A stretch of DNA of 64,000 nucleotides, taken from contig JBLDXI010000002.1 in NCBI GenBank assembly GCA_047495785.1, positions 1,612,001 to 1,676,000 of the forward strand. Reading direction: 5' to 3'. Shown piece after piece: positions 36,912 to 39,664 of the stretch. This DNA is from Lepidodermella squamata (taxonomy: Eukaryota > Animalia > Gastrotricha). The first letter of the stretch is position 1; every line of letters begins with the position of its first letter. A program made the position numbers and the translations under genes. Below the pieces are notes generated by a model. It was not told where the DNA came from, made no database searches, and saw nothing but the letters and a program-made list of their open reading frames with translations.

Positions 36912-39664
36912 ATGGCTTCTTATAATAATCGTCGTCCGGCTGGCGGTCCCTTCGGCATGCCATCAAACGGTGGTGGCTATCCATCCGCTCCATCATACGG
37001 TAACTCAAACGATCGTTGGGGTAGCGGAGGTGGCAGAGGCGGTGGTGGCGGCGGAGGAGGGTACGTTTGAACTGAATAATTTGCTTGTTAATCTAGTATG
37101 ATGACCGTTTTTATTTCCTCTAGCATGAAGCGTAGATTTGAAGATGACGATCTAGCCAGCGGAATGAAAAAGCCCAAGTTTGAGGATCTTAAGCCCTTCC
37201 GAAAGAATTTCTACCAGGAGCACCCTCTGGTTACTGCTCGAACTAAAGCCGATGTCGATACTTACCTAGCGTCCAAGCAAATCACCGTATCTGGGAAGCA
37301 CTGTCCGAAAGCTGTGTTTAGCTTCGAAGAAGTTGGTTTCCCGGATCAAATCCGAAACTTGCTCATGAGGAAACAAGATTTCGTCGCCCCTACTGCTATT
37401 CAAGCACAAGCTTGGCCGATCTGCTTGAGCGGTAACAATCTTGTCGGCATTGCACAAACTGGCTCTGGCAAAACTCTGTCATTCATCTTGCCCGCAATCG
37501 TTCATATTATGAACCAAGAACCATTGCGACATGGCGATGGCCCCATTGCTGTCGTTCTAGTTCCGACCCGTGAACTTGCGCAACAAGTCGAACAAGTCTG
37601 TTTGGAGTTCGCTCAGCCCTGCGGTGTCCGCACTGCCTGCGTCTACGGCGGAGCGTCTCGTCATGGTCAAGGTGGACAGTTGCGTCGCAGCCCTCAGATT
37701 GTCGTTGCGACGCCTGGTCGCTTGATCGATTTCTTGAAAGATCGTACTACTAACATGAGCCGTTGTTCATTCTTGGTTCTTGACGAAGCTGATCGCATGT
37801 TGGACATGGGTTTCGAGCCTCAGATTCGCACTATTGGTAAGTCGACCCGCTGAAAATAACGAACGCTTTTTATATTTCAATCCTTTTTTAGTTGATCAAA
37901 TCCGCCCTGATCGCCAAACGTGCATGTGGTCCGCCACCTGGCCTCGTGAGGTCAAAAAGTTGGCCGAGGAGTTTCTCCGTGGCGACTACTGCAAGATCAA
38001 CGTTGGTTTCCAGGATCTCAGTGCCAATCATAATATCACTCAGATCATCGAGTGTATGACTGATCGCGACAAGGACAATCGCCTGCTCGAACTTATGAAA
38101 CACGTTTTCAGCGAAAGCGGCAAAGTAATTATATTTGCGGAAACGAAAAAAGGTGTCGACCGTCTGTGTTACTTCCTTAACCGCTCTGGGTTAGTTATAG
38201 ATTTGAAACTTGTTATTGTAAAACCTCGGATCGCTTTTTCAGTTATCGCTGCATCGCTATCCACGGTGATAAGTCTCAGATGGATCGCGAACGAACTTTG
38301 GCTGACTTCCGTAATGGCCGCAACAAGTGTCTGATTGCCACCGACGTCGCTGCTCGTGGTCTAGGTAAGTTCGTTGAGGAGAAATTCGAAATATCGTGCG
38401 CTATTGGTTCACTTCATTTTCGGCTAGTGGGTGTGGGATTTAAGCATGACCTGTTTTGAATTTGATAAGTAACTAATGTTTGTTGTTTCTATTTCTTATT
38501 CGTCAAGCGGCCACATGAAATAAAGATATGAGACCATCATATACTTTGTGTGGTGGCTTGGCTGTTGCTGCGACGACCTTTTGCTGTGCCACATGAAGCG
38601 GGATATTTCGCCGCCTCCGGATAAAATGTGGCCTTCCATTGTTGTCGTCGTCGTCATTTGCGCGTCTTTCATTTATCCGTCTCGCGGTGATGTCTTGCGA
38701 AGTGGAACACCCTATCTCACGGCGCTGACGTAAGTTGATTACTGACACCACTCCCGCGCCGTGGTTGTTCCCGCTTCGACTTTCACCATCATAAAGAACT
38801 GTGAGCGTTATCGTATTCGGCTTTCCGAACGATCGTTTCATGAAACAGTCTTTCAATCAGAGACGTGATAATATTTTTTTATGCATTTTCATCTTCAGCA
38901 ATTTTACTCAGGCGAGAAAGAAATAAATTTTTTGCTACTTAACAACGGTTTGCGCGTCTTATTTTTGCTCAAATTGAACCAAAGCGCTAACATTTTCCGT
39001 ATTGCAATACTAATTCTTTGTTTTGTGGCGGTGCCCATTGGATGCTTGGTTAGACGTCCATGATATTGGGTAAGTTAATTATTCTCAATTTGAACCATCG
39101 ATTTTAATCATTTATTTTTAGTTATGTCATCAATTACGACTTCCCTAATTCATGTGATGATTACGTGCATCGTATTGGCCGCACAGGCCGTCGTGACCGT
39201 CGCGGCATTGCCACGACCTTTTTCACCCCTGAAGACGGAAAACACGCCCGTCAGTTGATCAGCGTTTTGCAAGAAGCTAAGCAACAGATCCCCGACAAGT
39301 TATACCAGTACTCTGAACAGTCTGGTCGCTTCGGCGGTGGTGGCGGCGATCGCCGCGGTTTCCGCGGTTCAGGCGGAGGCCGTGGTGGAGGTGGTCGTGG
39401 CGGTTCAGGCGGCTTCCGCGGCCGGTCTGCTGGCGGTAGTGGTCGCTGGGGCCCCCCGAATGGTAACGGCATGAATGGCGGCGGTTACGAAGATCGAAAA
39501 CCCATGTTCAACGGAAATGGTAGCAACATCTCCAGCGATGTTTTGAATGGTTAAATTTTTTATTTTAAGGTGGCTCTCGCTCATACGGCACAGCACCCCC
39601 TCAATATGGCGCTCCACCAGGTGGCGTTGTCAACGGCATGTCTCAGCCGTTCCAATTCAGTTGA
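36912..39664 (+). CDS. DDX5: DEAD-box RNA helicase p68/p72 (DDX5/DDX17/Dbp2), multi-exon
   Basis: [11 protein letters not shown] motif, [30 protein letters not shown]|[13 protein letters not shown] tail; long intron 38365-39053 and 16-nt exon 39054-39069. Confidence 0.93.

Follow-up and report, generated by a model that had tools for sequence, protein, structure and literature searches.

The window analyzed here, i.e. the entire 64,000-nucleotide (nt) stretch between positions 1,612,001 and 1,676,000 (forward strand) of contig JBLDXI010000002.1 (GenBank assembly GCA_047495785.1) from the gastrotrich Lepidodermella squamata, contains at 36912-39664 (+) a gene for a DEAD-box helicase of the DDX5/Dbp2 type, which consists of seven exons and encodes 596 amino acids (aa). 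The long intron of this gene holds a second, internal 3' splice site, the AG of which lies in the basal stem of a stable hairpin, and RNA derived from the intron begins exactly at the nucleotide following this AG. This suggests that use of the internal acceptor gives a dead-end transcript, and the layout as a whole suggests an animal variant of a known helicase-sensing switch that was previously shown only in land plants. The broader reading, in which the long intron serves the helicase gene as a regulatory module, with a hairpin-masked decoy acceptor acting as a feedback switch, is given about an even chance of being correct. The core of an original prediction made from the DNA letters, namely that a masked internal acceptor leads to a dead-end transcript, is right; its detail of a 222-nt cassette exon is probably wrong, and nonsense-mediated decay (NMD), which it had proposed as the route of removal, may not be the one used.

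Internal acceptor and hairpin in the long intron

The intron separates the codons of ARGL|DV, with exon 4 ending in ...ARGL plus a G and the microexon that follows beginning with AC GTC (D V), at a position that is conserved from yeast DBP2 to human DDX5 and that has the same phase at fungal and other loci. In order, the introns of the gene measure 63, 55, 53, 689, 52, and 50 nt, and the disparity that had been predicted (689 nt at ARGL|DV against approximately 55 nt elsewhere) is borne out; the sequence elements that the original prediction had listed are all present where it had placed them. The internal AG is situated 143 nt into the intron, with the real acceptor another 546 nt further on. 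It is preceded, as anticipated, by a pyrimidine tract and a branch-like motif, and it ranks at the top of the 19 AGs found past the first 30 nt of the intron, since 80% of the 20 nt in front of it are pyrimidines, which is tied for the best value, and it is the only one among the top-ranked AGs with a CTAAT upstream. The canonical acceptor (39053), with 60% pyrimidine, has the poorest tract in the gene. Translation confirms that an exon starting at 38508 would read G|CG GCC ACA TGA with an immediate stop, and the consensus donor GAC|GTAAGT at 38730, which together with the internal AG implies a 222-nt exon (38508-38729), is present in the sequence as well.

The hairpin that had been predicted to cover this AG (38504-38560) is recovered by folding at 38502-38562, where it reaches z = -6.1, with 0 of 200 dinucleotide shuffles being as stable. 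In its sequence context the AG at 38506-38507 has a pairing probability of at least 0.999, and the pyrimidine tract upstream of it is open; the cost of opening the 7-bp basal stem amounts to 9.7 kcal/mol. The reverse strand folds with -17.9 kcal/mol only, the G-U pairs of the sense strand making the hairpin sense-specific. Equally stable 70-nt windows form only 18 clusters on the + strand of the 64 kb, and these are mostly G+C-rich, whereas the hairpin has a G+C content of 41%. The controls, ten canonical acceptors together with the remaining 18 AGs of the intron, all placed in the same frame, gave a mean z of -0.26, with none of them reaching -3, and the 689-nt intron folded as a whole gave z = -4.4. 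The second stem, which had been predicted to follow the first hairpin, does exist, although it is weak on this strand (z = -2.5), and it is not conserved in the near relative L010 described below. Within it, GCCACATGAA at 38588-38597 is a direct repeat of ten bases of the 5' arm of the first hairpin (38510-38519), which provides a second possible partner for the 3' arm of that hairpin, and such a pairing was seen in a fold. Elsewhere in the window, a near-perfect 29-bp inverted repeat at 55496-55565 (47% G+C, -52.5 kcal/mol) represents the most stable 70-nt window of the + strand.

The conservation of the intron was assessed with run X2, which contains DNA from a near strain or species and was compared with the window by site class. 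The long intron shows 2 differences in 689 positions (0.29%), as compared with 15 in 273 (5.5%) for the short introns and 9 in 597 (1.5%) for third codon positions (Fisher tests against the long intron, p = 3.5e-7 and p = 0.03, respectively). The long intron is under strong constraint and is conserved to the same degree as the coding exons taken together. A second comparison is offered by the relative L010/L011, from an ENA metagenome assembly, with approximately 80% aa identity. It has a 700-nt intron at the same codon, although its other introns differ and its microexon is merged with the following exon. Most of the two long introns is unalignable, yet they share nine words of at least 9 bases, as opposed to 2.7 expected, six of which are collinear; the collinear words kept include GTGGCTTGGCT of the 3' arm of the hairpin, AATAAATTTT with the poly(A) signal, and the tract leading up to the real acceptor. 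At the corresponding place, L010 has a stem-loop that is its most stable 70-nt window and carries two tract-preceded AGs (z of -3.2 to -4.4). The structural conservation that the original prediction had expected in relatives thus extends to the 3' arm and to an AG-bearing stem and does not include the distal half of the hairpin; the donor of the supposed cassette is not conserved in L010 either. A word search for closer relatives by exon 2 returned one cluster at 84% identity and then none above 64%, the corresponding search by exon 6 returned none, and the best match in a scan of metagenomes was 57%.

Two other origins of the intron content were considered and rejected. A repeat or transposon does not account for it, as the region is single-copy in the genome and an intron that occurs once is not a repeat. 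A nested gene is not indicated either, the open reading frames (ORFs) of the intron, including one of 117 aa on the minus strand, being without a Pfam match and unconserved in L010 by tblastx. An Rfam search of 36000-41000 at E <= 10 gave two chance-level matches only, both outside the intron.

RNA from the intron and the proposed switch

The RNA evidence consists of the assembled contigs of run X1, not of reads, with coverage derived from depth bins; the contigs are spliced and leader-bearing, which identifies X1 as RNA. The main mRNA contig (depth figure 379) skips the entire 689-nt intron and uses the distal acceptor. Alongside this fully spliced mRNA, the intron is represented at 38508-38688 (depth figure 40) and 38717-38946 (30), showing it to be incompletely or alternatively processed, while no X1 contig covers 38365-38507 or 38947-38991. 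The boundary of the first intron contig is 38508 exactly, without extra letters, which is the exon start that had been predicted, and the 143 nt preceding it are absent from the RNA contigs. Unspliced pre-mRNA or DNA would be expected to cover these 143 nt too, and the RNA from 38508 is thus a distinct species. At the other end, an AATAAA at 38922-38927 lies within the 10-30 nt expected for a poly(A) signal ahead of the contig end at 38946, and the isoform is probably polyadenylated inside the intron near this position. With one end at an acceptor and the other near a poly(A) signal, this RNA is most simply explained by splicing of exon 4 to 38508 and by polyadenylation within the intron. Intronic polyadenylation, if it does occur, would put the stop codon into the terminal exon, and NMD then need not be the route of removal. 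Of the predicted poison isoform removed by NMD, the non-productive RNA starting at 38508 is seen, whereas the cassette form is not, and NMD is perhaps not the route.

Two further explanations of the boundary were tried and discarded. An antisense transcript ending at 38508 finds no + strand TTTATT within 30 nt, and a sense AATAAA stands before the other end; trans-splicing at 38508 is at odds with a contig that has no leader letters, whereas the mRNA contig keeps 19 of them. As a separate observation, one X1 contig joins 38946 to 39050 on opposite strands by way of a 59-nt piece (38992-39050). Fold-back priming, a lariat, and an inversion were all considered for this joint, none of which fits, and in X2 the corresponding DNA contig is collinear.

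Of the alternatives, the one that survives best, albeit as an unlikely one, is an intron that is simply detained or spliced with low efficiency and undergoes nuclear decay like that of S. pombe dbp2, with the hairpin and the AG being irrelevant to site choice. Low splicing efficiency and pre-mRNA decay are documented for this intron in yeasts (PMC4695336), many database proteins read through its donor as 'RGLG...', and a weak canonical acceptor followed by a microexon would fit such a scenario. Retained pre-mRNA would, however, include the first 143 nt, which are absent from the contigs, and the location of the boundary on the best internal AG would be left unexplained, as would the stem-borne acceptors in other animals.

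Quite unlikely is the explanation in which the RNA from 38508 is a stable intron-derived or independent noncoding RNA, its end being created by an exonuclease block, a cleavage, or an internal start. It draws on the fact that the contig ends at 38508 without letters of exon 4 or of the leader, that this boundary is located inside the base of a stable stem, and that the constraint spans the whole intron and not the hairpin alone. An end directly past an AG with a tract and a branch site, 6 nt within the stem, speaks against it, as an exonuclease would stall earlier; neither a conserved ORF nor an Rfam family was found, and a trans-spliced version of such an RNA would be expected to carry approximately 20 leader letters, none of which are on the contig.

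The contig spanning 38717-38946 is also what makes the classical poison cassette of the original prediction, i.e. 38508-38729 included between exon 4 and the microexon and removed by NMD, improbable: it continues across the donor at 38730, and the joints listed for the X1 contigs do not include one from 38729 to 39054, so that the isoform seen retains the intron downstream of its alternative 3' site and is not a clean 222-nt cassette. The absence of the joint is weak evidence, since rare forms drop out of contigs and NMD could keep a cassette too rare to assemble. The donor at 38730 is, moreover, the sole internal consensus GTAAGT, the stop is in frame with junctions downstream of it, plant genes make a cassette beside the alternative 3' form, and the millipede gene described below has a GTAAGT 255 nt past its alternative acceptor. 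Finally, the view that the hairpin is a microRNA-like small-RNA precursor to which the constraint is due is very improbable, for although it is a 61-nt sense-specific hairpin and a microRNA has been reported from the human DDX5 intron (Moore et al. 2011, RNA 17:555, as cited in PMC4695336), its 24-bp stem with an asymmetric internal loop falls below a canonical Drosha substrate (approximately 33 bp or more), Rfam gives no microRNA family match at E <= 10, the 38508 boundary is off the expected Drosha cut, L010 lacks the distal half of the stem, and the ends of the hairpin differ from those of the intron, which argues against a mirtron.

In the model of a hairpin-masked acceptor, which is preferred here, the internal 3' site would act as a decoy that, with its branch-like motif, strong tract, and AG, is by sequence a better acceptor than the real one. 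The hairpin would lock the decoy AG in its basal stem, leaving the tract free. As long as it is closed, exon 4 would be joined to the 16-nt microexon, giving rise to the full helicase. When it is open, exon 4 would be joined to 38508, following which the frame would stop after three codons; the RNA made in this state would keep the downstream intron and probably end near 38946, and the helicase it encodes would be cut before motif VI. That the stem does mask the site we infer from the choice made by the mRNA, since, in a genome with introns of approximately 55 nt, a site that lies 143 nt from the donor would be expected to win if unmasked, and the mRNA uses the distal one. The likeliest opener would be the helicase itself, whose RGG tail is of the kind that confers specificity in plants, and this would result in negative feedback on its own level. 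This identification of the helicase as the sensor is well motivated but tentative, and somewhat less than even confidence is placed in it.

Several observations weigh against this model. No joint of exon 4 to 38508 is listed among the X1 contigs, and with contigs as the only RNA evidence the 5' boundary could be an RNA end; the missing joint may be due to an assembler dropping a thinly covered branch next to a path ten times as deep. Contig depth is unable to rank isoforms. The poly(A) site is deduced from a contig end that also has the opposite-strand joint. The distal half of the hairpin is missing in L010, and the two close species available do not amount to a real covariation test. One animal transcript (L103) has a similar acceptor without a significant stem, and the opening of the stem by the helicase is, for the gastrotrich, a proposal only.

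Counterparts in plants, fungi, and other animals

The land-plant system in question is the DEAD motif of DRH1/RH46, a long-intron hairpin of 19-20 bp whose base conceals an alternative 3' site; it is known from Burgardt et al. (bioRxiv 10.64898/2026.01.23.701338) and Sack et al. 2025, and the mechanism demonstrated for it is precisely the one that the original prediction had put forward. According to Burgardt et al., active DRH1 opens the hairpin via its RGG tail, and the opened stem leads to alternative 3', cassette, and retained forms with early stops, for which there is mutational proof; the same authors called the motif plant-specific and absent from algae (bioRxiv 10.64898/2026.01.23.701338). 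The gastrotrich gene resembles it in having a single long hairpin (24 bp versus 19-20 bp, with a loop of 5 nt versus 3-5 nt) within the long intron of a DDX5 orthologue, with an alternative acceptor in the basal stem, and in that both proteins have an RGG tail. As for the products, the plant genes make an alternative 3' form keeping the rest of the intron and, in addition, a cassette, whereas here an alternative-3'-like RNA is present and a cassette was not seen; the gastrotrich RNA, moreover, may have its 3' end made by polyadenylation within the intron. Helicase dependence, which is only proposed for the gastrotrich gene, has been proven for the plant motif, and the likeness described here is one of layout.

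The same intron has a longer history in fungi and human. Its conservation between yeasts and human was noted in 1991 (Iggo), and it was described as a seat of autoregulation in 1995, as summarized in PMC4695336; the DBP2 intron of S. cerevisiae is conserved, long, and autoregulatory (Barta and Iggo 1995, as cited in PMC4695336), and intron 2 of S. pombe dbp2 has a low splicing efficiency, with nuclear pre-mRNA decay involving Mmi1 and the exosome (PMC4695336). The link between a large intron at this place and autoregulation or retention in yeast DBP2, which the original prediction had cited as established, is therefore documented; conserved position and length, poor splicing, and a part in negative control are on record for S. 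cerevisiae, S. pombe, and human (PMC4695336). The yeast introns share with the gastrotrich one the position, a length that is unusual for the genome, and inefficient or alternative processing, and in yeasts the level of the helicase is negatively controlled through this intron. The means differ, in that yeasts rely on retention and nuclear decay or on undefined intron sequences, with no masked internal acceptor having been described in them. For human p68/DDX5, a conserved, alternatively spliced intron with a microRNA hairpin has been reported (Moore et al. 2011, as cited in PMC4695336), so that the same intron again combines alternative processing with an intronic hairpin; the human hairpin is reported as a microRNA precursor, however, whereas the present one overlaps a splice acceptor and fails the microRNA criteria tested. 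With the poison exons of SR and hnRNP genes the gastrotrich intron has in common a conserved noncoding element in the protein's own gene that leads to a non-productive isoform, but SR and hnRNP proteins bind sequence motifs, whereas the signal proposed here would be a duplex opened by an RNA helicase. A literature search in a limited library found no such stem described in any animal DDX5/DDX17 gene.

Of the 120 database proteins that match exon 2 best, 39 stop a few residues past A[AS]RGL. Many such proteins read through the donor as 'RGLG...', and those of insects, a tick, and a millipede have 'RGL-EAH/EAQ/EAP' instead, which corresponds to a spliced-in exon. In the millipede DDX17 gene (L099), an annotated alternative acceptor (ttttcAG|AGGCAC) lies within a 59-nt hairpin (z = -4.9, -26 to -29 kcal/mol), in its basal stem of 10 perfectly matched base pairs, and the annotated truncated product ends in the exon begun by this stem-borne acceptor. 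In an eel (L104), which was folded around its alternative exon only, a stem-loop folding at -36.2 kcal/mol (z = -3.4) has the G of the annotated alternative AG in its first pair. A DDX5-like gene of a marine eukaryote (L025:1617-1689) has a hairpin of the 30-bp class in the same intron, with an AG at its base (-52 kcal/mol, z = -7). The window borders of the positive cases were partly picked after looking, which makes their z-scores somewhat optimistic. The liver-fluke intron (L101) showed no convincing stem at an AG, the leafhopper locus and L102 stop short of the intron, and no record was found for the truncated isoforms of a sawfly, a tick, and a hawkmoth. In the fungal part of the database, many entries of 90-230 aa are labelled only 'helicase C-terminal domain', and these look like the exon past the conserved intron called as a gene of its own.

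It is rather unlikely, though worth stating, that a hairpin-masked acceptor is a widespread and possibly ancestral feature of the DBP2/DDX5 intron and not a plant invention. If it were, the position and the length of the intron would have been kept from fungi to animals and plants for the sake of a duplex that measures unwinding activity of the DDX5 type and responds to it with unproductive processing; the four animal instances would be the gastrotrich and its relative L010, the millipede, and the eel, and the AG followed by a GGC(C)AC-like word, which gives E-A-H in insects and eel, would be a trace of common descent. Outside fission yeast the mechanism of this intron has stayed unclear, and a helicase-sensing hairpin was shown in 2026 in plants only. 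An animal gene with the same layout, with RNA starting at the base that had been predicted and with a strongly constrained intron, together with the stems in an arthropod and a fish, makes the helicase-sensing idea testable in animals, may explain in general why the conserved DBP2/DDX5 intron persists, and provides a concrete model by which cells might adjust the amount of a global remodeller of RNA structure.

Gene structure and spliced leader

The identity of the gene rests on database searches that were made by single exons, the joined protein having been translated only. Exon by exon, Pfam assigns DEAD (E = 2e-42) and Helicase_C, the latter with E = 1.3e-10 for exon 4; the named relatives closest to exon 2 are animal DDX5, DDX17, and p62, at 53-60% identity, and the C-terminus of the helicase is an RGG-rich tail. 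Every junction of the gene, including those of the microexon, which had been predicted to be only 16 nt long, is borne out by one spliced transcriptome contig of run X1. The earlier gene model stands as regards its other junctions but lacked the 50-nt intron 39520-39569, which is missed by a plain ORF reading and is visible in the RNA contig as a joint of 39519 to 39570; with this intron added, the protein has 596 aa and its stop codon ends at 39664. The coordinates of the gene and of the features of its long intron are collected in the table.

Table. Positions of the helicase gene and of the elements in and around its long intron (window coordinates)
Feature	Position	Strand	Description
Spliced-leader acceptor AG	36889-36890	+	Upstream of the ATG at 36912; leader-bearing RNA contig
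Exons 1-7	36912-37060, 37124-37836, 37892-38189, 38243-38364, 39054-39069, 39122-39519, 39570-39664	+
Exon 4	38243-38364	+	Ends in ...DVAARGL and the initial base of the codon after it; motif V region; from translation and contig
Long intron	38365-39053	+	689 nt, GTAAGT..TTAG; RNA joint 38364 to microexon to 39122
Branch-point-like AACTAAT	38471-38477	+	Branch A 31 nt ahead of the internal AG; from sequence
Pyrimidine tract of internal acceptor	38478-38501	+	Predicted single-stranded, pairing probability < 0.06
Hairpin	38502-38562	+	24 bp, 5-nt loop; -29.9 kcal/mol; basal stem 38502-38508/38556-38562 holds the AG
Internal (decoy) 3' splice site AG	38506-38507	+	Contig boundary at 38508
Intron part in RNA	38508-38946	+	X1 contigs; main part of the non-productive isoform and probably its alternative terminal exon
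In-frame TGA	38516-38518	+	Three codons past the alternative junction; frame of exon 4 read into 38508
Second stem-loop	38567-38654	+	-31.3 kcal/mol, z = -2.5
Donor-like GTAAGT	38730-38735	+	Sole GTRAGT in the intron besides the real donor
AATAAA, probable intronic poly(A) signal	38922-38927	+	One of two in the intron; 19 nt before the contig end 38946
Microexon	39054-39069	+	16 nt; letters between the two sides of the RNA contig joint
Exons 6 and 7	39122-39519, 39570-39664	+	Motif VI, RGG-rich tail, C-terminus; from joint, translation, Pfam Helicase_C

The contig of the DDX5 mRNA carries 19 non-genomic letters ahead of 36889. This 19-mer has 35 copies in the genome, arranged in tandem clusters with a spacing of approximately 680 nt, and a GTATGT is reported after each copy; the clusters of the leader word are located at C17:1137309-1142022, C19:1472970-1476087, and C54:2837693-2839197 of the genome G000. 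The DDX5 mRNA is trans-spliced, and the AG|GTATGT after the leader copies is what spliced-leader RNA genes typically show. At two places, L093 (G000 C2:993646-993664) and L094 (G000 C4:652787-652805), the leader word has no GT donor after it and is directly followed by other sequence; these two copies may have arisen from trans-spliced RNAs by retrocopying.

The 52-nt intron that follows the microexon starts with GTAAGTTAATTA, which resembles the internal donor GTAAGTTGATTA (39070-39097 versus 38730-38741), and further in it is similar to 38959-38981 (19 of 23 bases). This intron is missing in L010, and it may have arisen from duplicated pieces of the long intron. Over 39077-39218, two haplotypes occur in both X1 and X2, one of which is identical to the window, while the other has 11 differences in 169 nt, 7 of the 11 falling within the 52-nt intron.

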